In this document: in pieces, positions 8,196-59,627 of the stretch
Layout of the letters: each line of letters begins with the position of its first letter
How positions within the stretch are numbered: the stretch's first letter is position 1
Virus record (IMG/VR): IMGVR_UViG_3300032242_002041
Coordinates: 124,001-188,000 of that record
Strand: one strand, 5' to 3'
DNA length: 64,000 nucleotides
Translations under genes and position numbers: made by a program
Notes under the pieces: generated by a model
The model's input: the letters and a program-made list of their open reading frames with translations, nothing else
What the model was told of the DNA's origin: nothing
Database searches by the model: none

Positions 8196-8401
8196 TTTAA
8201 ATTAAACATTGTGGCATGAGCATCTTCTTTGATTCTAATTTGGTAGCGTTGATACTGCCACTCGGGCAAGCATCTATCCATCCACAATCCTTTTTGTTCT
8301 GGCGTATGTTTGGGCCCTATATTTTCCAAACACCATGCTTGAATATTTTCAATATATGCTTTGTTAGTACTAATAAAGGTAAATTGTTTACAAGTTTCCA
8401 T
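8183..8401 (-). CDS. Small paralog-family protein
   Basis: Ends IRIKEDAHATMFNLKWQS. Confidence 0.75.
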   Translation of the reverse strand: METCKQFTFISTNKAYIENIQAWCLENIGPKHTPEQKGLWMDRCLPEWQYQRYQIRIKEDAHATMFNLKWQS

Positions 8402-9633: not shown

Positions 9634-9841
9634 GTGCTACGGCCGCTTCGTAACCTTGTGCTTCTAAGATAATATCACGAACACATTCGCGGTCAATCGA
9701 GTCACCGCAGAATTCACCACCTGTTGTATATAGACGACACTTGTAAAGTTGGGTGGCTAGGTTAATTTGGGTAGCGGTAAAGCCATAATCATAGACGCCA
9801 TTAGGGCCATAAAATTCAAGCATATAACGAGTAAAGTCCAT
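9623..9841 (-). CDS. Hypothetical protein
   Basis: ORF track; AAGGAG SD upstream. Confidence 0.75.
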   Translation of the reverse strand: MDFTRYMLEFYGPNGVYDYGFTATQINLATQLYKCRLYTTGGEFCGDSIDRECVRDIILEAQGYEAAVALDQ

Positions 9842-9870
9842 TCTTGCTCCTTATTATTAACTATACAACT

Positions 9871-31289: not shown

Positions 31290-31645
31290 CTATTTTCTGT
31301 TACGAGGTATAATTACCCTAAGCAGTGATTAAACTGCTAAAGATTGACGTTGTGCTGTACGAGCAGAGAACTTAACGTTCTTACCTGAAACAGTTACTTC
31401 GCCTGTATTTGCGTTTGCATTTACGAGATTTGCTTCTTCGACCGAGCTTCCCCAGTCCTAACGGCTTTAGCTTTGCCGATTCTCCAATAGCCCTTGTGTG
31501 CCAATCGATACCAAATTCATCCCCACCGAAGCATACTGTTTTCACCCTCCGAACTTCACGCTGGGTAACGCATCACAATACACTTCGGTGGAGATGTCGG
31601 GGCTTGAACCCGAGTCTTGCTCACCCTACTTCTATCTTCAACGAA
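31290..31645 (-). ncRNA. ssrA: Circularly permuted (two-piece) tmRNA
   Basis: Acceptor piece GACTCGGGTTCAAGCCCCGACATCTCCA (to 31589) precedes 5' piece GGGGATG (31524); intervening self-complementary stem; tag ORF 31418-31329 ANANTGEVTVSGKNVKFSARTAQRQSLAV; outer ends approximate. Confidence 0.85.
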
Positions 31646-31777
31646 TTTTATTTTGTGGCATACTTTTTTAAGTCGACCACTACTAAACCCTTTATGTTGG
31701 ACAAGAGTTCGACCAACTTTTACTCTAAGACACAGTTTGCCTTCACTACGAAGGAATTACAACAATTCTTTTAAAAC

Positions 31778-40721: not shown

Positions 40722-41471
40722 TCAAGATTTTTTAAACACTGGAATAGGATTCATTTTGTGTAGACTGCGAGCACGTATCTCTTGATATTTTTGTAGGCGT
40801 TCAAGTTCCAAGCTATTTTTTACTAAAATAGTGCCTTCGTCTTGTTGCATGGCAAGTTCCAAATCAACATAAGTCATTCCGCCTAGTTGATCTTCGTCTG
40901 TACGTCCATCATCCCATAAACCGTCTGTAGGAGGAGCATCAATGATGTCTTTGAGTACACCTAGTTCACGACCCATTTGCCATACTTCTGTTTTGTAGCA
41001 ATCAGCAATAGGACTGATATCCACACCGCCATCACCGTATTTGGTATAAAAACCTACACCAAAGTCTTCTACTTTGTTACCTGTACCTACCACAATACCC
41101 GAAACACTTTGAGCAATTTGATAAAGTGTAACCATACGCAAGCGACTGCGACTGTTGGCAAATCCTAACAAGTTGTTGTAGGTGGCCAAGCGGCCTTCAA
41201 ACTCATCAAAGACAGTGGTTAAGTCAATGATCTCGTGACGCACATTGTCAAAGCGTTCAGCAAGCCAGGCACCTTGGCGCATACTAAGATCGTGTAGTTC
41301 TGGACGCTGACGAATAGGCATGGTTACTGCCACAGTATTCAACCCAGTGCGAGCGCAGAGTGCGCTGACTACAGCACTGTCAATGCCGCCACTAATGCCA
41401 ACTACCAATGATTTTATATTGGCTTGTTGAGCATAGTTCTTAATCCAGGCTGTAATTTGATCTTGTAACAT
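40722..41471 (-). CDS. nadE: NH3-dependent NAD+ synthetase
   Basis: GISGGIDS, RSRLRM, GTGN, FYTKYGDG, PTDGL, TDEDQLG. Confidence 0.92.
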   Translation of the reverse strand: MLQDQITAWIKNYAQQANIKSLVVGISGGIDSAVVSALCARTGLNTVAVTMPIRQRPELHDLSMRQGAWLAERFDNVRHEIIDLTTVFDEFEGRLATYNNLLGFANSRSRLRMVTLYQIAQSVSGIVVGTGNKVEDFGVGFYTKYGDGGVDISPIADCYKTEVWQMGRELGVLKDIIDAPPTDGLWDDGRTDEDQLGGMTYVDLELAMQQDEGTILVKNSLELERLQKYQEIRARSLHKMNPIPVFKKS

Positions 41472-41739: not shown

Positions 41740-42077
41740 TATGTAATATTATGTTCCCAAAATTGAACCTTCAACCGAGTTTCAGGATCAAGTGTTGCCG
41801 GATCCTTTGCTTGCATTAATTCAACCCATTTCATGTAAGCCTTCCTGCCATCGCCTTGTGCTTTGGCACGCCGCCCACATTCTTCACACACGTGAAATGC
41901 CTGAACTAAAATTTTTCCATCTTTTTTAGGATAGACTTCAAAATCTTCTTTAGTAAATTTATCCACACACCCATTAAATGTGCAAACCACTTCCATGGTC
42001 ACTGGGTCTAAAAAAGCTACATCAACTTTCTTTTTTGACATTTTTTTAATCATTACTTGCCCCAACCATTGCCCCAC
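41739..42077 (-). CDS. Hypothetical protein
   Basis: ORF track; CEEC; exact start uncertain. Confidence 0.6.
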   Translation of the reverse strand: MGQWLGQVMIKKMSKKKVDVAFLDPVTMEVVCTFNGCVDKFTKEDFEVYPKKDGKILVQAFHVCEECGRRAKAQGDGRKAYMKWVELMQAKDPATLDPETRLKVQFWEHNIT

Positions 42078-42919
42078 AAGTCTACATGTAAACGTGGACT
42101 ATAATTAAATCCACGTTCACAGCAAATATTGGCAATGTTTAGTTTATTTGATTCATACGGATCTACAACACCGCCTTGTGGCATTAGATAGACAACACCT
42201 GTAAATCCACCTGCACGAAAAGCATCAACGGCCCGAACAGCTTCATTGACATGATCTTCAGTTTCAACAACAAACTTAAGATATACGTGTCCGTATGTTT
42301 GATATTCGGCAACAATATCAGGACAAATGGCATCTTCCCAACGTTCGCCACTGGCACTTAGTTTAGCACTGACACTAAAGGTAACTTCTTTGTCTTCACA
42401 ACCATAGGTCCAAAAATTGTCAACCAAAAACTTTTTAAAATCTTCAGATAATGCTTGGGTGCCATTGGTTTCAAATGTAAGATTTTTTAAATCTGCCATA
42501 CGAGGATGACTCAACAATTCACCATAAGCACGTTGCCAACCTAGCAACGGCTCTCCACCTGTAATAACCAAGTGTACATCATTGCCGTTGTTCTGTGCCC
42601 ACTGACGATTGGGAGTTAGATCTGTCATATGTGTTACAAGTTCTTCTGTAGTGTAACTAGGCGATAAATGCTTAAATGCAGGATGCCACGACGCATAGCT
42701 GTCACATCCTGTTTCTACCAAGGGCAAGTCCAAAAAGTTATTGTACATATGGACAACTTCGGCTACATCGTCGGCACCTGTGCTCTTCTCACCTGGCTTA
42801 CAACCAAACCCACTACAGGTAAAGTTACAGCCATAAGTGCGTAAGAACACACTAGGCACACCAACAAAGCGTCCTTCGCCTTGTAAACTATAAAATATTT
42901 CGCTTACTTTTATTTTCAT
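42053..42919 (-). CDS. queE: 7-carboxy-7-deazaguanine synthase (radical SAM)
   Basis: SEIFYSLQGEG, FLRTYGCNFTCSGFGC, ITGGEP, ETNG, PRLHVDLW. Confidence 0.9.
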   Translation of the reverse strand: MKIKVSEIFYSLQGEGRFVGVPSVFLRTYGCNFTCSGFGCKPGEKSTGADDVAEVVHMYNNFLDLPLVETGCDSYASWHPAFKHLSPSYTTEELVTHMTDLTPNRQWAQNNGNDVHLVITGGEPLLGWQRAYGELLSHPRMADLKNLTFETNGTQALSEDFKKFLVDNFWTYGCEDKEVTFSVSAKLSASGERWEDAICPDIVAEYQTYGHVYLKFVVETEDHVNEAVRAVDAFRAGGFTGVVYLMPQGGVVDPYESNKLNIANICCERGFNYSPRLHVDLWGNGWGK

Positions 42920-43413
42920 TTCCACCAATCTTCCCAAGGAAAAACAATCCACACGTCTTCTTCAGCCTTATTTAGGTCAACGGCTGAGTAGCTAACATTT
43001 AATTCACTAGTACTCGCTTCATTATCTACTAACACAGCAACACGAACAGTATCGCCCCAGATCTCTTGCCACTTTGGATTGTCCGGTAAACTACTACTCA
43101 TCCAATCTTCTCGGATCCAATTTAGTGTAGCACCCGAGTCGTTAATATCGTCCACAATAAGAATACGCCGTTGTTCAAAGGCATCTTCACTCATCCATAG
43201 GTTCGATTCGGGTTGGCTAGTATCATCACGCAAACTAACCTTAAGACATTCCATTGGACATTCTAAGTACTGACTAATTAGATTAGCTGGCACTAGTCCG
43301 CCACGAGTAAGTCCAACTACATAATCAGGCCGCCATGGATCCAGTGCCATTTGACGTAGGATTTCTTGTGTTTGTGCTTCGACATCTTGCCAGGTATAAT
43401 ATACTTTTTTCAT
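42916..43413 (-). CDS. Purine phosphoribosyltransferase (type I PRTase)
   Basis: GLTRGG, ILIVDDINDSGAT, WIVFPWE. Confidence 0.88.
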   Translation of the reverse strand: MKKVYYTWQDVEAQTQEILRQMALDPWRPDYVVGLTRGGLVPANLISQYLECPMECLKVSLRDDTSQPESNLWMSEDAFEQRRILIVDDINDSGATLNWIREDWMSSSLPDNPKWQEIWGDTVRVAVLVDNEASTSELNVSYSAVDLNKAEEDVWIVFPWEDWWK

Positions 43414-43419
43414 GTTACA

Positions 43420-43448
43420 ATTATACAATACTTGCCAACACTTGTCAA
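43420..43448 (-). promoter_or_regulatory. Sigma70-type promoter
   Basis: TTGACA-17-TATAAT. Confidence 0.9.
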
Positions 43449-47534: not shown

Positions 47535-48050
47535 TTAGTCTTCGTAAGTAGCTGAATTAGCACCATGTTCAAACACTTCTACAGATTTAATCCTAACTGT
47601 TGGATTGATCGGATAACGCATGTCGCCACTAGCCAACAGTTCAGCCATTTTGTTATAGGCCAGTTTGGCAAACATTTCACAGCCTACTCCGGGCACAATG
47701 CGCAGATCACACAAGGCACCGCGTTCATACGGCAACTTGCTTAGATGATTTTTGCTGTCAACATTTACAATTTCGTTCATGTGTTTGAAAAAATCTAACA
47801 TTGGATCGTCTTCGGCCACGACCAAAGTATGATCAAACATATAGTCTGCCCATGCTTTGAATTCTTTCAAACCACCAAAGTCCATACACCAGTTTTTGTC
47901 ATCTAGTGTATCACATTCAAAGATTAATTTGATACCAATTGAGTATCCGTGAAGTGTTGAGCAGTGACTATGAGTCGCTCTCCACTGTCTAAAACAGCAT
48001 GAAAGTCCGCGATCGTTGCCGTAAGTTTTTGTTGAATAGTACTTTGCCAT
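47535..48050 (-). CDS. queD: 6-carboxy-5,6,7,8-tetrahydropterin synthase
   Basis: CSTLHGY, MDFGGLKEFK, FDHT, FEHGANSA. Confidence 0.88.
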   Translation of the reverse strand: MAKYYSTKTYGNDRGLSCCFRQWRATHSHCSTLHGYSIGIKLIFECDTLDDKNWCMDFGGLKEFKAWADYMFDHTLVVAEDDPMLDFFKHMNEIVNVDSKNHLSKLPYERGALCDLRIVPGVGCEMFAKLAYNKMAELLASGDMRYPINPTVRIKSVEVFEHGANSATYED

Positions 48051-48054
48051 TTGT

Positions 48055-48133
48055 TTCTCCTATGTTAGATTATAGCATAGGCGGCAGAGTTTGTAAAGCG
48101 GGAGTGACGCCAAGACCGCTGTGAATCTATTTA
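48055..48133 (-). promoter_or_regulatory. queD leader: preQ1-I-like pseudoknot, anti-SD hairpin and overlapping promoters
   Basis: TAAATA 48128-48133; P1 AGCGG/CCGCT; TTTACA-17-TATAAT (48069-48097); CCTATG/CATAGG hairpin covers the SD. Confidence 0.55.
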
Positions 48134-48654: not shown

Positions 48655-51306
48655 TTAATCTATCCAAAATCTAAGTTCGTGCATTAGTCGATATTGATTC
48701 TGCTGGGTTCCCATAACACTGAAACGATACATGGTCTTTTTATCAATCATGTTAGTGTATAATGCTCTAACATACGCTGTAGTTTGATTCTGTATTGCTA
48801 GTTTTTTGTTAGTGTACACTATATTGCCGCTGTTGTCAACACCAGTCGGCATCTTTGCCTCCACATTGCCTGATAATACCACAGGCTTGACACCAGCATA
48901 TACTCCAAGATCACCAAACTGATCTTCGGTATAACGATATCCGGTTTCAGCCCAAGCACCGACTATGTTATTAACCTTGGTTATTAATCCTGGAGTAATG
49001 TTGGTTGTAACGTGCATCAAGCTGGCCTGTGTGCTAAAGCCACCATCTCGGTAAGTGGCCACATTGTCTAGGATGCCTGAATTGGTAACAGTGCCCCAAG
49101 CACCACCAAACGCCATCCAGGGATTGGTGTTTAGGTTGGTAAACTGAGCACCATAGGTAAACTTACCGTTTTTATAAATTTCTGGAATACCTACAGAGTA
49201 TTGTGTGGGCTTTTGTAGCATTCCAGGTCCTTGATCGTTACCAAAAAATGCATTACGATTTTCTGTAGCAACACGCATATTGCCATAGGTTACTGGTGTG
49301 CCATTAACCAGATATTCTGCGTGGCTAGTTAAATTGTATTGATCAGTGTGTTCAGTGTTATAACCAAAACTATTCATGCCTGACACATTCATAAATTTAA
49401 GGTTGGTTGTAAACCCACGACCTACACTGTCAGTGACCAATGTATCGCTATCATCAAGCCCTAGACCCATTACGTATCCACGTATTGGTGCAAATCCTTT
49501 GCCACCACTTAGTGGTATTGACATATCGCCCACGGGCTGAAATACTTTAGTCGTGTCTAGTAAATTAAAACCAAAATAGTTAGTTGAGCTGGCTGCCAGC
49601 ACGGTGTTGACTTGTGCATTACTCATCCACGGCCATACCTGTTTAATCGCCGTAACAGTTGCCTGAGTAGTGGTACTGGCCGTGTCTCCTAATTTGCTGA
49701 GATAGATAGCTTTTTGTTGTGTACCATTGCCGCTATAACTGATTGCTGTAGCAAGATACATGCTATTATCTGGCCCTTTAACAAACACAATACCATTGGC
49801 ACCGCCGGCTGCACTGGCATTAATTGCCTTTTCAAGAGCCACCGATTGTCCTACAAAAGCATCAATGATGGCGGCATAGCTGGCCACATATTTGTTTTCT
49901 TTAGTGTGTATTAATACTTGTGCGCCGGTAGTACTTCCCCAACCAGTTGCGGCTAATACGATGTCAGTTAACCCGTCGCCGTTAACGTCTACAAGTTTAG
50001 GATTATAGTTTGCAGAAGTTTTAGTATCATACCCAACCAGGGTAGTATCAGTAACATCTATAAATGTGCCACCACCTTTGTTTTTTAAGAATTGTATCTC
50101 ACTGAAGTCAGGCCATGCTCCATTAGTAAACCAAGGTCTACTAAAAATAACAGCACTAGTTAATCCAGAGTTGTCAAAGTCAAACGCTAACGCTCTATAA
50201 TCGGTCGCTCCGCTAAAACCGTAACTATCCCATTTAGGTAAAAAGAATCTTGAGCCTGGCAAAGTACTGATCTTGGTTATTTCAAAGTCTAGTGTGCCGC
50301 GATTGGTGTCGGTCATAGCCCAGCTATATAAATTTGTGCTACAAGTTTTGCAACTAGTTACTCCAGAGTCTGTTAGAATAACCGTACTAGTGCCGTTGCC
50401 CATAAAATCAGCAATAGCTACTGAAGCAGCAGATCCACCATAATCCAGCCCCGACACAGTATGAGCAACAAAATTATTAGTACGCGAACCAAATACAACC
50501 TTACTACCTGTTGTAAAGATATCGTCAATGCCATCACCGTTGATGTCGTAGACTGCACTGTCATGACCATTAATACCGAGTCCTAAATCAACTCTAGTAA
50601 AACTTGAACCGTTATTAAGAAATAACCAACCAGATCCAATATTAGCACCATTATCTGTATTTGGTGAAACGTACATACTTTTTCTTCCACTACCATTAAA
50701 GTCACCAAACTTTACACTAGGTTCTGTACCTAAAATTACATTATCCGTTCCTGTGAACCATTTACTAGTTTTGTTTACTAACTGACCGTTTTCCCAATCA
50801 AAAATGTTCAAATTATATGTAGGATAACTACCGCCATTGGTTGTACCAGAGCGACCTGCTGTAACAAGTTGTTGACCCGTTCCGGCAAGATTTTCAGCGT
50901 ATAATGCACTTGAATCGTATTCGTACACTGCACTATTAATCGGAGTAACTGATCCAACACGAACCGGCGTGGCATATGGAACATAGGTATTTGTGGGTGT
51001 AGTGGTTGTGGGTGTAGTAGTGGGTGTAGTGGTTGTGGGTGTAGTGGTTGTAGTGGGTGCGGTAGTGGGTGTAGTGGTTGTAGTGGTTGTGGGTGTAGTA
51101 GTGGGTGTAGTGGTTGTGGGTGTAGTAGTGGGTGTAGTAGTAGGTGTGGTGGTTGTGGGTGTAGTAGTGGGTGTAGTAGTAGGTGTGGTAGGACCTGTAC
51201 CTTGGGTAGGGGGCGCAGATGTACCTGGATTGTTTGCGCCTCCACCGCCGCCAGCACAAGCTACTAATTGTAGTACTACTGTTGCTAAAAGCAAAATCCG
51301 TTTCAT
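48655..51306 (-). CDS. Large lipoprotein: Thr/Pro linker + FG-GAP/VCBS repeats + probable C-terminal beta-barrel
   Basis: Lipobox LVAC; GDFNGSG, DINGDGIDD, DVNGDGLTD repeats; beta-rich C-terminus. Confidence 0.75.
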   Translation of the reverse strand: MKRILLLATVVLQLVACAGGGGGANNPGTSAPPTQGTGPTTPTTTPTTTPTTTTPTTTPTTTPTTTTPTTTPTTTTTTTPTTAPTTTTTPTTTTPTTTPTTTTPTNTYVPYATPVRVGSVTPINSAVYEYDSSALYAENLAGTGQQLVTAGRSGTTNGGSYPTYNLNIFDWENGQLVNKTSKWFTGTDNVILGTEPSVKFGDFNGSGRKSMYVSPNTDNGANIGSGWLFLNNGSSFTRVDLGLGINGHDSAVYDINGDGIDDIFTTGSKVVFGSRTNNFVAHTVSGLDYGGSAASVAIADFMGNGTSTVILTDSGVTSCKTCSTNLYSWAMTDTNRGTLDFEITKISTLPGSRFFLPKWDSYGFSGATDYRALAFDFDNSGLTSAVIFSRPWFTNGAWPDFSEIQFLKNKGGGTFIDVTDTTLVGYDTKTSANYNPKLVDVNGDGLTDIVLAATGWGSTTGAQVLIHTKENKYVASYAAIIDAFVGQSVALEKAINASAAGGANGIVFVKGPDNSMYLATAISYSGNGTQQKAIYLSKLGDTASTTTQATVTAIKQVWPWMSNAQVNTVLAASSTNYFGFNLLDTTKVFQPVGDMSIPLSGGKGFAPIRGYVMGLGLDDSDTLVTDSVGRGFTTNLKFMNVSGMNSFGYNTEHTDQYNLTSHAEYLVNGTPVTYGNMRVATENRNAFFGNDQGPGMLQKPTQYSVGIPEIYKNGKFTYGAQFTNLNTNPWMAFGGAWGTVTNSGILDNVATYRDGGFSTQASLMHVTTNITPGLITKVNNIVGAWAETGYRYTEDQFGDLGVYAGVKPVVLSGNVEAKMPTGVDNSGNIVYTNKKLAIQNQTTAYVRALYTNMIDKKTMYRFSVMGTQQNQYRLMHELRFWID
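50995..51195 (-). repeat. Coding tandem repeat (PTTT/PTTTT)n
   Basis: Imperfect 12-15 nt units such as CCCACAACCACTACA and CCCACTACTACA. Confidence 0.9.
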
Positions 51307-51337
51307 TGTATAACCTAGATTAATTAACAATACTAGT

Positions 51338-51396: not shown

Positions 51397-52203
51397 TTAT
51401 CTAGGCGCAAAGTCCTGTTGTAGTTTAATATTATCCATAAATTCTTTTTTAGTTCCAGGATCTGTATTAAACGCACCTTTAAGTACTGTAGTCTGTGTTA
51501 GACTACTGTGCGCCATAATGCCTCGGTTTTCGCAACAACCGTGTGTAGCTTGAATATAAACTCCAACATTCTCACTGTCGGTTGCCCGCATTATTTCTCT
51601 CGCGATGTCATTGCATAGCTCTTCTTGCAAAGTACCACGCCTAGCGCACCACTGAGCTATCCTAGTATATTTGCTAAGACCAATGAGTTTATTTGCGGCA
51701 ATAATACCAATATAAGCAACACCACTGACAGGTTGATGGTGATGACTACACATGCTACGGAGCTCACTACGAACCACAAGCATACCTTCGTAACGATCCG
51801 CTGAGTCATTTGGAAAAGCTGTTGCATCTGGTGCTGGATCATATCGACCTCCCATAATTTCGTTATAATACATTTTAGCTAGACGTCTAGCGGTACCTTT
51901 ACTGTTAGGATCATTTTCACGATCAATTAATAGTGTGTCCAGTACCTGTTCAAATGCCACCGTGGCTTCATTGATTAGTTGTTCTTTATCACCTTCATGT
52001 AAATAATCACTGATATTATCGCCTGCCCAGAAACGCTTCTTATCACGTTTCATCTTAAAGCGGATAGCATCGGCTAAATTTGCTTCTTTATAGCCCTTAT
52101 CGTCCATGCCAACATCTTCATAGCCTGGGTGATACGGTGCTTCTTCTACTAATTTAGAATTAGCCAATGCGTTTTTTAAGTCTTCTGATGTAAATGTTGT
52201 CAA
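51397..52203 (-). CDS. folE: GTP cyclohydrolase I
   Basis: DPNSKGTARR, SMCSHH, GLSK, LQEEL, HGCCENRG; TTG start. Confidence 0.95.
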   Translation of the reverse strand: MTTFTSEDLKNALANSKLVEEAPYHPGYEDVGMDDKGYKEANLADAIRFKMKRDKKRFWAGDNISDYLHEGDKEQLINEATVAFEQVLDTLLIDRENDPNSKGTARRLAKMYYNEIMGGRYDPAPDATAFPNDSADRYEGMLVVRSELRSMCSHHHQPVSGVAYIGIIAANKLIGLSKYTRIAQWCARRGTLQEELCNDIAREIMRATDSENVGVYIQATHGCCENRGIMAHSSLTQTTVLKGAFNTDPGTKKEFMDNIKLQQDFAPR

Positions 52204-52211
52204 TTCTTTTT

Positions 52212-52279
52212 CTCCGAGTTATAGGGTCGTGGATGACCAGTCTTGTTACTATTGTAACAGTTATTTAGACCGTTGTCTA
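52212..52279 (-). promoter_or_regulatory. folE promoter and preQ1-I-like leader pseudoknot
   Basis: TAGACA-17-TACAAT with nested TAAATA; GGTC-ATCCAC-GACC-CTATAACTC-GGAG. Confidence 0.55.
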
Positions 52280-55256: not shown

Positions 55257-55718
55257 TTAAATTACAGTTGATTGTGTTGGACGAGTAAGATTATAACTAA
55301 TGGAGCATCCGTTCTCGCCGTCTTCGGATACTTCAATTACTACAGCACGACCGGGATAGCGTTCGGCTATCTTTAAATATAAATCATCGGCAATCATTTC
55401 ACATGATTTCCAGTCTAGTTCTAAAACGGGATTCGAAACAATTCCGTTATTGGAATAGAGATTTTCAAGCCACCGTTTGAATTGGATGAATTCGATATCT
55501 CTGTCGTTATGGAAGACATCGATTGACACCCGGAAATGAAAGATATGGCGATGAGGACTGGCCAAAAACGATACATCATATTCTCCTGCTGTGCATAATG
55601 CTGGGTCTGTTGCAGCCGCTGGATAGCGATGAATGCCTTCCTTACGGAATGTAACCCAAATTTGTCTCTGGGCTGCCGCTTTAATGCGTTCAATAGTTTC
55701 GCGTTCTTGTTGTATCAT
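55257..55718 (-). CDS. T-fold QueD paralog, DpdL-like (candidate CDG decarboxylase)
   Basis: LASPHRHIF fits the LxxxHRHxF signature recalled for DpdL; SCEMIA, SEDGENG. Confidence 0.6.
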   Translation of the reverse strand: MIQQERETIERIKAAAQRQIWVTFRKEGIHRYPAAATDPALCTAGEYDVSFLASPHRHIFHFRVSIDVFHNDRDIEFIQFKRWLENLYSNNGIVSNPVLELDWKSCEMIADDLYLKIAERYPGRAVVIEVSEDGENGCSISYNLTRPTQSTVI

Positions 55719-56890
55719 TTCTGGTGGCTTTCTATATTAGTATTATTAAACGAGTCAATGGCATCATACATATCTGGAAAAATTGCACGACTATTTAATT
55801 TTCTATCTTGGTCTAATTTGTTAAATTCTTCTACTGTATATTCAAGTCCGTCCCAATTGGATTTATAGGGAGTTCGATCGTCGTTTAACGAGGCAATTAC
55901 GTTGTCAATGCCAAGAATATTTGAATAATCATTTTTAGAAATTCGCTGTCTAACCAACTCTCTCTGGTGATCAGTTAGTCGTTGAATTGCCCACGGACCA
56001 CCATTATCTCTCAGATTGTAGATATTAATAGTTATTGCTCGATGAGATATATTCAAAGTTTGATGCACCAAATCAATAAAATCCCAAATTGACAACGAGT
56101 TAATATTCATAAACACCATGTTAAAACTAAGGTGATGCTTTGCAATCAAGTTAATTGTGTGTAAATTTTCTAAGAAAACATTCCATTTTCCGGGCCAACG
56201 AATATATTCATATTGTTCTGCAATTGATTCTCCGCTAACTAACCATTGTACATTACTAAACTGTTTCAACAATTCAAAAATTTTATTTTCGTGTATTAGG
56301 CTAAGATTAGTATTAACACAAATACGACAAGATTTATTAACTTCTAATAATTTTCTTAAGACTATTTCGTTTTCTTTTATCATCAACGGCTCGCCACCAG
56401 CAAGATATATTTCTTTAAGGTCGGCAGCAGATTCTAAAACATAATCTAACAAATCTCCTTTGGCTTCTTTCATCTTAACTACTTGATATTTCTGTTCGGC
56501 CCATAGTGAGCTGAGCTCAGGGTCACAATATATGCAGGCAAAATTGCAGGTATTGTTCCAACGCAAATCAAGATATTTTAAATTAAAGTTATCAATATTG
56601 TTGTAAAACTCATCACCAAGATGGTTATATTTCTTTTTAAAATGATGTTGTAAAGTATGAGTACCAATCTGAGAGTGGCAATTTTTACACCCTTCAACCG
56701 GAATATCATTTAACATCATTGTTTTGATATCGAGATTATTAGAGCCGCTTATTGTGTCTTTGATTGCAGGAGTTTTATTAATATTACCTAATTTATTTTT
56801 ACTCACACAACAATTTTCTATATTGCCTTGGGGGTCAATATACAGTGAAACCCACGGCGCTGGACAGAAATGTTTATTATCTATGGTCAT
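55715..56890 (-). CDS. Twitch-domain radical SAM protein
   Basis: N-terminal CPAPW...CC; CNFACIYC; AGGEPL. Confidence 0.85.
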   Translation of the reverse strand: MTIDNKHFCPAPWVSLYIDPQGNIENCCVSKNKLGNINKTPAIKDTISGSNNLDIKTMMLNDIPVEGCKNCHSQIGTHTLQHHFKKKYNHLGDEFYNNIDNFNLKYLDLRWNNTCNFACIYCDPELSSLWAEQKYQVVKMKEAKGDLLDYVLESAADLKEIYLAGGEPLMIKENEIVLRKLLEVNKSCRICVNTNLSLIHENKIFELLKQFSNVQWLVSGESIAEQYEYIRWPGKWNVFLENLHTINLIAKHHLSFNMVFMNINSLSIWDFIDLVHQTLNISHRAITINIYNLRDNGGPWAIQRLTDHQRELVRQRISKNDYSNILGIDNVIASLNDDRTPYKSNWDGLEYTVEEFNKLDQDRKLNSRAIFPDMYDAIDSFNNTNIESHQK

Positions 56891-57728: not shown

Positions 57729-57927
57729 TTTGTTCTGTATTATAATGGGTGGATGGATTATTTTCTTGTTTAAGTATAACAATTTGTTTTTTTAATTGCA
57801 ACCTTTGTTTCTTCAAATCAGTTAGTTCAACATCATCAAACACACCGGTGCTTTCCAAACCGTCAATTCTTTTGTTGAGTGCGTGGTGTGCTTCTTCTAA
57901 ATGTTTAATTCTTCTTTCCCAAGACAT
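57721..57927 (-). CDS. DUF465/YdcH-like coiled-coil protein
   Basis: HLEEAHHALNKRI...LKKQRLQLKKQI. Confidence 0.65.
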   Translation of the reverse strand: MSWERRIKHLEEAHHALNKRIDGLESTGVFDDVELTDLKKQRLQLKKQIVILKQENNPSTHYNTEQND

Positions 57928-59627
57928 TAGGCCTCCAGATTATCTAGTTTTGATTCATCTAAATCGGCATCATCTCCATCAATGCCATCGTTTGATTCCT
58001 CTACTTCAAATAATGCATTAAATTGACTGTGTGCGTTTTTGGCTTTTTTACCTTTGAATCCGCGTGTGCCTACAATGTCCATCCAGTAACGATCATAAGA
58101 CTCAATAATGGCTTCGGCTTCGGCACGATCAGGCGTAGCAAAGATGGCTTCTACAATGTCTTTAAATCGTGTATGATCTCCGTTTTGATCCCACATCATG
58201 GCGGGCCAAGATCCGTTGTCATATTCACGATTAGCTCTTTGTACAGCTTCTAGGTGCATCCAAACATTATGGCCCATTAGTAATGCATAACTAAAACTAT
58301 CCCACGATGTCTTGCCTTCTTTGCCAATCTTGTTCAACATACCAGGTTGATAGTAACAAACATCCTTCATTTGTAACTGTAGACTGATTGGACTCTCGTC
58401 AAAGTGATCAACAAGACCATCGGCTACTACCGCTTGTCCATACGGACGAGTATCTGTTGAATACTTTTTATCGTCCGCAATTGGACTCATTCGATAGCAC
58501 CACTTTTCGTTGTGTGGAAGGTCGATGTGGTGGTAGACTTGCCCATTTGCTGTAGCCAAAAACGGCGAAGCACAATCAAAACTAATAGTAAAAGAAGGAT
58601 TAACATACTTACGAACTGCACGTTGAATGTCTGTAAGTAATACTGCCCACTCTAATTTACTTGTGCCCAAGAAGTGCATCCAATCATGCACACCTTCTTT
58701 TAACAAGCCATCGTGGCGTAATGCTACAAGTCTACGCAGGACCAAATGCACATCGCACATGTTCTGACCACCCATTGACCAACCATCAAAGTGTGTGTCT
58801 GGGTATATGGCAGGGTCACAATAGTGTTTCATTGTTTCATACCAACGATCTGCGTCAGCGTGATTGGCACCTTGTAAAACATTAAGAACTTTCATGCCAC
58901 CATTCTTGGCGCCCTTGCGGTGCTTCATGTAATAGTCATTATTATATTTGGTAGCAGCCACAGCTTCTTCTAGTGTAGTAATGCCACACTTGGCGCTGGC
59001 GTGTTTGTCATGTATGACCCAGGTTGGTATATCAAGTGTCATACCATAGTCGGCAACACCATCTAACCATTTGAGTACAGCTTCACGTTTCTTCTGTGCA
59101 GCATCTAATAGATTTTGATAATTTTTAACATGATCAATCTTAATGTATTTGGTATTACCATTCTTATCGTGCTTGGGGGTACCATCGGGTTTAAGATCCG
59201 GCACATGCTCAACACCCTTGGCCCGGAGCTCGGCCATCTTGGCCAACACCACTGGACTTGTTGGGTCGCGCCACTCACCTTCCCATAGACCTTTGGCAAT
59301 TTGGAATCCACCTGAGTCGCCTAGCATTACAGTGCCAGGTTCACGATTACGAACCATATCCTCTGACCAGTCTTGTTTGGTTAGATCCAAGTTGGCATGT
59401 CCACCCGAATACAAAGACCACTTATATGGAAATAAGCTCTTGGCGCTGTTAAGCCAGTTCATCATTTCCATATCTTTCATGCCAGCTGGCATACGAGTTT
59501 TTGGGTCTACATACGGTCCGTTTACTGGATCTCGTTGTTTACCTATGTAAGTGGCATAGAAACCACTAATAGCTGGCAAGAACACAGCATAATCGTTTTG
59601 TTTGGCTGTAAGATTATCTTGAGTCAT
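57927..59627 (-). CDS. TGT-superfamily guanine transglycosylase (DpdA-like)
   Basis: LGDSGGFQ, MTLD, VLQG, HFLG, SFDCASP; co-located with folE/queD/queE. Confidence 0.8.
   Translation of the reverse strand: MTQDNLTAKQNDYAVFLPAISGFYATYIGKQRDPVNGPYVDPKTRMPAGMKDMEMMNWLNSAKSLFPYKWSLYSGGHANLDLTKQDWSEDMVRNREPGTVMLGDSGGFQIAKGLWEGEWRDPTSPVVLAKMAELRAKGVEHVPDLKPDGTPKHDKNGNTKYIKIDHVKNYQNLLDAAQKKREAVLKWLDGVADYGMTLDIPTWVIHDKHASAKCGITTLEEAVAATKYNNDYYMKHRKGAKNGGMKVLNVLQGANHADADRWYETMKHYCDPAIYPDTHFDGWSMGGQNMCDVHLVLRRLVALRHDGLLKEGVHDWMHFLGTSKLEWAVLLTDIQRAVRKYVNPSFTISFDCASPFLATANGQVYHHIDLPHNEKWCYRMSPIADDKKYSTDTRPYGQAVVADGLVDHFDESPISLQLQMKDVCYYQPGMLNKIGKEGKTSWDSFSYALLMGHNVWMHLEAVQRANREYDNGSWPAMMWDQNGDHTRFKDIVEAIFATPDRAEAEAIIESYDRYWMDIVGTRGFKGKKAKNAHSQFNALFEVEESNDGIDGDDADLDESKLDNLEA

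Follow-up and report, generated by a model that had tools for sequence, protein, structure and literature searches.

A very small leader motif upstream of a phage folE gene, probably a riboswitch-like element that hides the ribosome-binding site

Does the folE gene of a freshwater jumbo phage start with a small regulatory RNA, or only with a hairpin that happens to precede its ribosome-binding site? The question arose from an earlier note, based on sequence alone, which placed at positions 52212-52240 of the DNA analysed here a minimal H-type pseudoknot sequestering the folE Shine-Dalgarno (SD) sequence, considered it a sister motif of the queD leader, and inferred that both genes are under end-product feedback by ultra-small riboswitches. 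The DNA (hereafter the window) is a stretch of 64,000 nucleotides, bases 124001-188000 of the 228-kb IMG/VR virus record IMGVR_UViG_3300032242_002041, which CheckV rates 66% complete; the DNA sequencing runs that hold it are freshwater and lake metagenomes. All long ORFs around the motif lie on the minus strand, among them a 268-aa ORF (51397..52203, minus strand) that is a GTP cyclohydrolase I, FolE (Pfam PF01227, E 8e-39; PHROG 2197), whose N-terminus is conserved in relatives and whose UUG start codon is at 52203-52201.

Read on the minus strand, the leader is TAGACA-17-TACAAT-agtaacaagacu-GGUC-AUCCAC-GACC-CUAUAACUC-GGAG-aaaaagaa-UUG. The 5' strand of the stem P1, GGUC (52238-52235), pairs with GACC (52228-52225) and encloses the hexaloop AUCCAC (52234-52229), which ends in C52229. 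The tail CUAUAACUC (52224-52216), with the conserved core UAACUC, leads into the SD sequence GGAG (52215-52212), and a spacer given as 7 nt (8 nt in the leader as written out) separates it from the UUG. The loop bases UCC (52233-52231) are complementary to GGA (52215-52213) of the SD and could form a second helix, P2. The motif proper spans 27 bases, 52238..52212, so that the interval of the earlier note adds two bases, CU, at the 5' side. The observation is confirmed: the sequence is exactly as described. Upstream lies a sigma-70-like promoter with a -35-like hexamer TAGACA (52274..52279) and a -10-like hexamer TACAAT (52251..52256), 10 of 12 matches and TG before the -10, ending 12 nt before P1. 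The predicted transcription start is near 52244, which would place the motif at the extreme 5' end of the mRNA. In relatives, 130 of 154 contexts have a promoter scoring at least 9 of 12, with the -10 ending 6-12 nt before P1. The start position is inferred from sequence only; metatranscriptome runs hold only contigs of relatives, give no 5' ends and may contain DNA, and so provide no evidence on it.

As a single sequence the fold is unremarkable, with a minimum free energy of -4.8 kcal/mol and a z-score of +0.45 against shuffles, and the case that it is more than chance therefore rests on comparison with relatives. To determine whether the motif is conserved in homologous leaders, which the earlier note had set as a test, we searched IMG/VR for FolE homologues. 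Of the best 80 of at least 599 matches, 63 loci show the same element, while some relatives (loci L002 and L008) have lost the hairpin yet keep ACUCGGAG. We then searched viral sequences with a pattern that fixes only the loop and the tail (ATCCWC, 4-9 free bases, AACTCGGAG), which returned at least 118 stretches. Among the 80 listed, 63 have a stem of at least 3 bp flanking the loop; 55 of these precede a FolE homologue (40-88% identity, a single one being only 40% identical), three precede an ORF of 129-132 aa, which in one checked contig (L066) lies just upstream of folE, and two run off contig ends. The 17 listed hits without a stem lie in no such context. The same pattern in bacterial and archaeal genomes gave a chance-like stem distribution and no SD-plus-start context among 120 sampled hits, in a partial scan that does not prove absence. 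In the phage's own 228-kb genome the motif occurs once, and CTCGGAG occurs only three times, so the tail is not a generic ribosome-binding context. A covariance model built on 45 diverse copies (R1) scores the folE leader at 43.9 bits (E 2e-12) and nothing else in the window above 10.9 bits.

In all, we collected 193 distinct versions of the motif in phage contigs. The loop is AUCCAC in 109, AUCCUC in 70, AUCCCC in 9, ACCCWC in 3, AUACCUC in 1 and GUCCUC in 1; the loop-terminal C is present in all 193; and loop position 5 is A, U or C but never G. The SD is GGAG in 189. In 181 of 193 instances GGAG is followed by a spacer of 5-9 nt and then UUG or AUG, so that the SD itself is the 3' end of the element at normal spacing from the start codon; overall the start is UUG in 107 and AUG in 85. 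The length from P1 through GGA is 23-27 nt in most copies and 27 nt in the window. Insertions on the 5' side of the UAACUC core are A/U/C-rich (CUAUAACUC, UUAAUAACUC, ACAACAAAUAACUC). A scan that left both loop and SD free (TAGAC, 6-7 free bases, GTCTATAACTC) returned 129 hits, of which 126 had AUCC[A/U/C]C and GGAG, indicating that both elements are under strong purifying selection.

The stem, in contrast, covaries freely (GAC/GUC, GUC/GAC, GCA/UGC, GCC/GGC and others, with at least 7 distinct combinations). In our alignment of the motif, pair 6-16 reads UA 19, AU 16, CG 9 and GC 1 with no unpaired case, pair 7-15 reads CG 38, AU 4 and GC 3, and pair 4-18 has four Watson-Crick types. Three of the four core pairs change on both sides and 94% of cells are paired, although this fraction is inflated because the instances were gathered with a filter requiring a stem of at least 3 bp. 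The covariation score is 0.389 against 0.100 in shuffles (0 of 500 as high) and at most 0.05 when partners are slid. Since every FolE-linked hit of the stem-free pattern had such a stem, P1 is nonetheless real.

P2 cannot covary much, because both of its strands are almost invariant. Matched changes were seen in two lineages, that is, in two evolutionary events, too few for statistics. Three contigs with different flanks have the loop ACCCWC, and all three have CGGGAG instead of CGGAG, which turns U-A into C-G; a targeted scan found no ACCCWC loop with plain GGAG, and in the census GGGAG occurs only with ACCCWC loops. Six contigs have the loop AUACCUC, and all six have AU-AGGAA instead of UC-GGAG, which moves the third pair to the other side of CC:GG; AGGAA occurs only with this loop. 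One outlier outside the 193 (L431) has U at the loop-terminal position and has lost GGAG as well. By a rough nearest-neighbour estimate P2 is near zero net stability, and since P1 is weak and only 3 bp in some relatives, the fold would need an additional stabiliser.

We next asked whether the queD leader carries a related element. The queD-like 6-pyruvoyl-tetrahydropterin synthase gene (47535..48050, minus strand; Pfam PF01242, PHROG 2389) has its SD GGAG at 48060-48057 and is preceded by an H-type pseudoknot at 48122..48078 (minus strand). Its P1 is AGCGG (48120-48116) with CCGCU (48101-48097), the unpaired C is at 48102, P2 is GGCG (48111-48108) with CGCC (48083-48080), and L3 is UUACAAACUCUGC (48096-48084). 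On an alignment of QueD-homologue leaders chosen by protein homology alone, from 80 loci, both a 5-bp P1 (AGCGG/CCGCU, UGCGG/CCGCA, AGAGG/CCUCU, GUCG/CGAC, GUGG/CCAC, CCGG/CCGG) and a 5-bp P2 (GGCAU with AUGUC, GACGC with GUGUC, GGCG with CGCC) covary: 96.8% of cells are paired, 8 of 10 pairs change on both sides, none of 500 shuffles does as well, and slid controls are low. We first read this element as a TTTACA-17-TATAAT promoter, but abandoned that reading because in many relatives the same sequence is a covarying RNA downstream of a separate promoter that ends just before P1; the match is most likely coincidental. The covariance model of this leader (R2) is unique in the window (50.8 bits), and in 198 folE-centred loci it hits 12 times, each time before a QueD homologue of 39-88% identity.

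The two leaders share the order P1-L1-P2a-L2(..C)-P1'-L3-P2b, the loop-terminal C and the tail ..UA(A)AYUC.. (UAUAAAYUC in the queD type). They differ in size and in what P2 pairs with: the queD type is about 45 nt, with a loop of 14-18 nt, a 5-bp P2 that does not involve the SD, an L3 of 13-14 nt, and the SD 20-35 nt further downstream. Neither model finds the other motif, R1 matching only the SD part of the queD leader, and we rejected at model level the idea that both leaders are the same motif. The shared GUCA(C)UCC pointed out in the earlier note is not a homologous element, since in folE it is the P1 strand plus loop and in queD it is the end of P2 plus L2; nor is the queD element ultra-small.

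Among cultured phages, BLAST of the 38-nt motif gave only noise, and R1 found nothing in the five with the closest FolE. However, Vibrio phage 2.275.O carries QueF, a COG1738 transporter, QueC, an amidotransferase and FolE, and there R2 hits the queC leader (AGCGG-ACCGUAACC-CCGCU-AUAUAAAUUC-AGGAG-aaaauaa-AUG; 17.6 bits, E 7e-5) and the folE leader (UGCGG-UAAGUAAUC-CCGCA-UUAAAAAAACUA..; 12.3 bits, E 0.006). Leaders of this general design thus precede three different enzymes of one pathway (folE, queD and queC) in different phages, and the queC version, like the folE motif, runs straight from ..AUUC into the SD.

The known element most similar to the folE motif is the preQ1-I riboswitch (Rfam RF00522), in particular translational members such as that of Thermoanaerobacter tengcongensis. 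Both have a short P1 hairpin followed by an A-rich tail, an unpaired C immediately 5' of the P1 3' strand and no separate expression platform, and both are associated with 7-deazaguanine (queuosine-precursor) genes. In class I the loop pairs with the first bases of the SD in a marginal P2 to give an H-type pseudoknot, and the same pairing is proposed for the folE motif on the strength of the two lineages with matched changes; SD occlusion by this class has been described (PMC4735710). In the folE motif, however, the loop is 6 nt instead of about 10-12, L1 is A (or AU if P2 is only CC with GG) rather than UUC/UC, L2 is reduced to one base plus the C, and L3 is 6-9 nt, with only two conserved A's in (N)UAACUC, against the class I consensus AUAAAAAACUA. 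The base before P2' is C rather than the A that contacts preQ1 in class I, the total length is 23-29 nt against 34 nt, the motif was found in phage contigs only, and the downstream gene is folE, which is not a typical target in bacteria.

At the gathering threshold, Rfam found only tRNAs and a permuted tmRNA in the whole window, and permissive scans of both leaders, of 16 queD loci and of 5 cultured-phage loci gave no significant family. RF00522 gives no hit on the folE leader at E up to 10, even when only 40 nt were searched. On the queD leader it gives 9.3 bits against a threshold of 39 bits, no better than six other weak matches in the genome, although it aligns P1, the UC-C junction and the UAnAAA tail in the right register. 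It gives the folE leader of the Vibrio phage only 12.5 bits, at chance level, and misses its queC leader. Neither leader of our phage qualifies as a class I preQ1 riboswitch by this model. Other small H-type pseudoknot riboswitches that occlude the SD (preQ1-II, preQ1-III, SAM-II/SAM-V, guanidine-III) follow the same logic, in which ligand-stabilised helices include or cover the ribosome-binding site, but they are larger (about 41-100 nt) with unrelated consensus sequences, and none was reported by Rfam on the folE leader at E up to 10.

We consider it most likely, with a probability of about 0.55, that the folE mRNA begins with a miniature preQ1-I-like translational OFF switch of 23-29 nt that senses a 7-deazaguanine intermediate. 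In this view, the motif would be a minimal H-type pseudoknot with a P1 of 3-5 bp, an L1 of one base (A), a 3-bp P2, an L2 of one variable, flipped base plus the invariant C, and an A-rich L3 lying along the P1 minor groove. By default the SD would be free and FolE made; when a pathway metabolite (preQ0, preQ1, CDG or similar) accumulates, it would slot in opposite the loop C, between P1 and P2, stabilise the otherwise marginal P2, hide the SD and shut off translation of the first pathway enzyme, which is how translational class I preQ1 switches work. The analysis itself demonstrates P1, its gene-specific conservation, its place just before the SD and start codon, and the co-occurrence of a related pseudoknot before queD, whereas the formation of P2 in vivo, ligand binding, the identity of the ligand, the OFF logic and end-product feedback are inferred, without ligand-binding or expression data. 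The interpretation given in the earlier note is therefore only partly supported. Besides the failure of the Rfam model, a P2 of only 3 bp with two events behind it, an L1 of only one or two bases, the C in place of A before P2' and a transcription start that is only predicted, it speaks against our reading that the folE-type motif was seen only before folE (or the small ORF next to it) and that the significant hits of R2 (E up to 0.001) precede only QueD homologues, while a ligand-sensing class might be expected to be shared among pathway genes. Also, this partial genome shows no QueC or QueF, leaving the pathway without an identified end product: the apparent QueC hit turned out to be NAD synthase, and Pfam models for TGT and QueF found nothing. 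We read the Vibrio-phage queC leader, the queD type and the folE motif as a graded series of preQ1-I-like pseudoknots, the folE motif being the most reduced, a homology that is inferred and not demonstrated.

Of the alternatives, a translational operator for a protein survives best, although we consider it unlikely. The hairpin would then be the binding site of a phage-encoded, or FolE/QueD-derived, repressor that blocks the adjacent SD, as in the T4 gp32, gp43 and RegA operators and the MS2 coat-protein hairpin, which are also short hairpins with a conserved loop next to the SD or start codon of a phage gene. An invariant loop on a freely covarying stem is the classic signature of a protein-bound hairpin, each motif type is tied to one gene family, as expected for autoregulation, and P1 is too weak to fold alone in some relatives. 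However, the matched loop and SD changes are explained by RNA-RNA pairing rather than by a protein site, the queD relative is a true pseudoknot with a covarying P2, related leaders precede three enzymes of one pathway, and T-fold enzymes are not known to bind RNA.

Less likely still is a constitutive element without a sensor, in which a 5'-terminal hairpin would protect the mRNA from decay while weak loop-SD pairing and the frequent UUG start keep FolE translation low. The predicted position at the 5' end of the transcript, the UUG start in 107 of 193 instances and the relatives that lost the hairpin, showing that it is dispensable, agree with this. But a stabiliser needs neither an invariant loop and loop-terminal C nor a conserved UAACUC tail, and the restriction to 7-deazaguanine pathway genes argues for gene-specific logic. 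Similarly doubtful is a riboswitch of this architecture for a ligand outside the 7-deazaguanine series, such as GTP (the FolE substrate), a pterin (H2-neopterin triphosphate or CPH4) or a folate. folE is atypical for preQ1 control in bacteria, folE-associated folate riboswitches exist (THF-II, also called the folE motif), the base before P2' differs from class I and RF00522 fails; yet related leaders precede queD and queC, which are specific to deazaguanine synthesis, and no THF-I or THF-II hit appeared in Rfam at E up to 10. Finally, a chance hairpin or a DNA-level signal is effectively excluded: although the single sequence folds no better than shuffles, the inverted repeat scores as terminator-like on the non-coding plus strand and a promoter match overlaps the queD motif, the neighbouring genes are all on the minus strand, no U-run follows the hairpin there, and stem complementarity is kept while the stem sequence is not, which fits an RNA helix and not a protein-DNA site.

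No Rfam 15 family matches the motif, and full-text literature searches found no description of a riboswitch or structured RNA before phage folE, queD or queC. An SD-sequestering pseudoknot of the preQ1-I kind is already known; the folE motif, probably a variant of this kind, stands out by its reduced size, its abundance, with hundreds of instances in freshwater and marine viral contigs, and its occurrence, on present evidence, in phages only. Riboswitches are reported to be rare in phages (McCown et al. 2017, PMC5473149), and class I preQ1 aptamers, at 34 nt, are regarded as the smallest. The motif would control the entry enzyme of the pathway that phages use to replace G in their DNA with 7-deazaguanines, an anti-restriction strategy. 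If it binds a ligand, it would set a new lower size limit for natural aptamers, provide a compact part for synthetic biology, and show that phages regulate DNA-modification metabolism by their own metabolite sensing, while the graded series would document how an aptamer can be miniaturised. A further reading, which we hold only tentatively, is that the folE motif is the smallest natural riboswitch aptamer and forms, together with the larger queD-type and queC-type leaders, a phage-encoded regulon that meters synthesis of 7-deazaguanine bases for DNA hypermodification, possibly sensing preQ0 or CDG rather than preQ1. Even if the partner is a protein, the element is a new and widespread phage translational operator.

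The remaining genes of the region agree with a phage 7-deazaguanine pathway. A YCTAAATA box, considered as a general phage promoter, has a genome count equal to the chance expectation. In addition to FolE and the QueD-like protein, the window encodes a protein with a weakly QueE-like N-terminus (42053..42952) and a purine phosphoribosyltransferase-like protein (42916..43428). A 566-aa protein (57927..59627) gave no Pfam, PHROG, NCBIfam or PDB sequence match, but carries the motif GDSGGFQ, and its nearest named clusters, by language-model similarity only, are viral TGT-like and DpdA families, suggesting a probable DpdA/TGT-like gene.

The leader of queD, at 48078-48122 of the window on the minus strand, is a well-supported H-type pseudoknot, in which both P1 and P2 covary across 49 sequences. 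It has no Rfam family, and in the phage contigs that we searched its covariance model hit, at E up to 0.001, only before QueD homologues. Related leaders can be found in a cultured phage, Vibrio phage 2.275.O (MG592671.1), which carries QueF, a COG1738 transporter, QueC, an amidotransferase and FolE. In this phage, the leaders lie at 8346-8389 and 9804-9843 of the locus examined (L811), before queC and before folE, and the queC leader is a 34-nt design that runs directly into the SD. This phage gives an experimentally tractable relative. A possible further variant of the same design, judged by eye, precedes folE in Sinorhizobium phage Phosso (PV764938.1, locus L798, about 1400-1467). As read there, the leader consists of UGUGG-ACAUAAAACGCUC-CCACA followed by a long A-rich tail and AGGAG, after a TTGACA..TCTAAATA promoter, although neither the folE-type nor the queD-type model scores it.

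In many relatives (96 of 154 related folE promoters) a conserved YCTAAATA box lies in the spacer between the -35 and the -10 of the folE promoter, and in the window this box is at 52261-52268 on the minus strand. The box resembles T4-type late promoters, but its overall count in this genome equals the chance expectation, so it is not a general promoter signal. In addition, an inverted repeat (TGTTAC-AATA-GTAACA, 52243-52258, minus strand) overlaps the -10 hexamer of the folE promoter in the window and is present in close relatives (ctgttataatagtaaca); it could be an operator or a coincidence.

In some phages the folE-type motif precedes an ORF of 129-132 amino acids with no Pfam match, as seen in the phage contigs L066 (2559-2593), L114, L119 and L140. 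In L066 this ORF lies just upstream of folE, suggesting a two-gene operon under the motif. A different departure is found in the leader of a FolE homologue in IMGVR_UViG_3300002307_000172 (L431), which has the loop AUCCAU, with the terminal C changed to U, and AGAGAG in place of GGAG. This variant is either a decayed copy or a copy with altered specificity.

An 891-aa protein is encoded between queD and folE (48655-51330, minus strand), with a signal or lipoprotein-like N-terminus and a long Thr/Pro repeat (PTTTPTTT...), and it has its own strong promoter-like site, TTGACC-17-TATAAT, at 51366-51338. Auxiliary metabolism genes sit near the pathway, also on the minus strand. These genes encode an NAD synthase (40722-41471), a protein with a QueE-like N-terminus (42053-42952), a xanthine/hypoxanthine phosphoribosyltransferase-like protein (42916-43428) and a twitch-domain radical SAM protein (55715-56890). 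No QueC was found in this 66%-complete genome. Finally, the phage encodes a permuted tmRNA (31386-31646, minus strand, 70.5 bits) and ten tRNA genes between 11546 and 35004 on the same strand, several of them clustered. Permuted tmRNA genes are also reported in the marine Melnitz-like myophages (PMC9004378).
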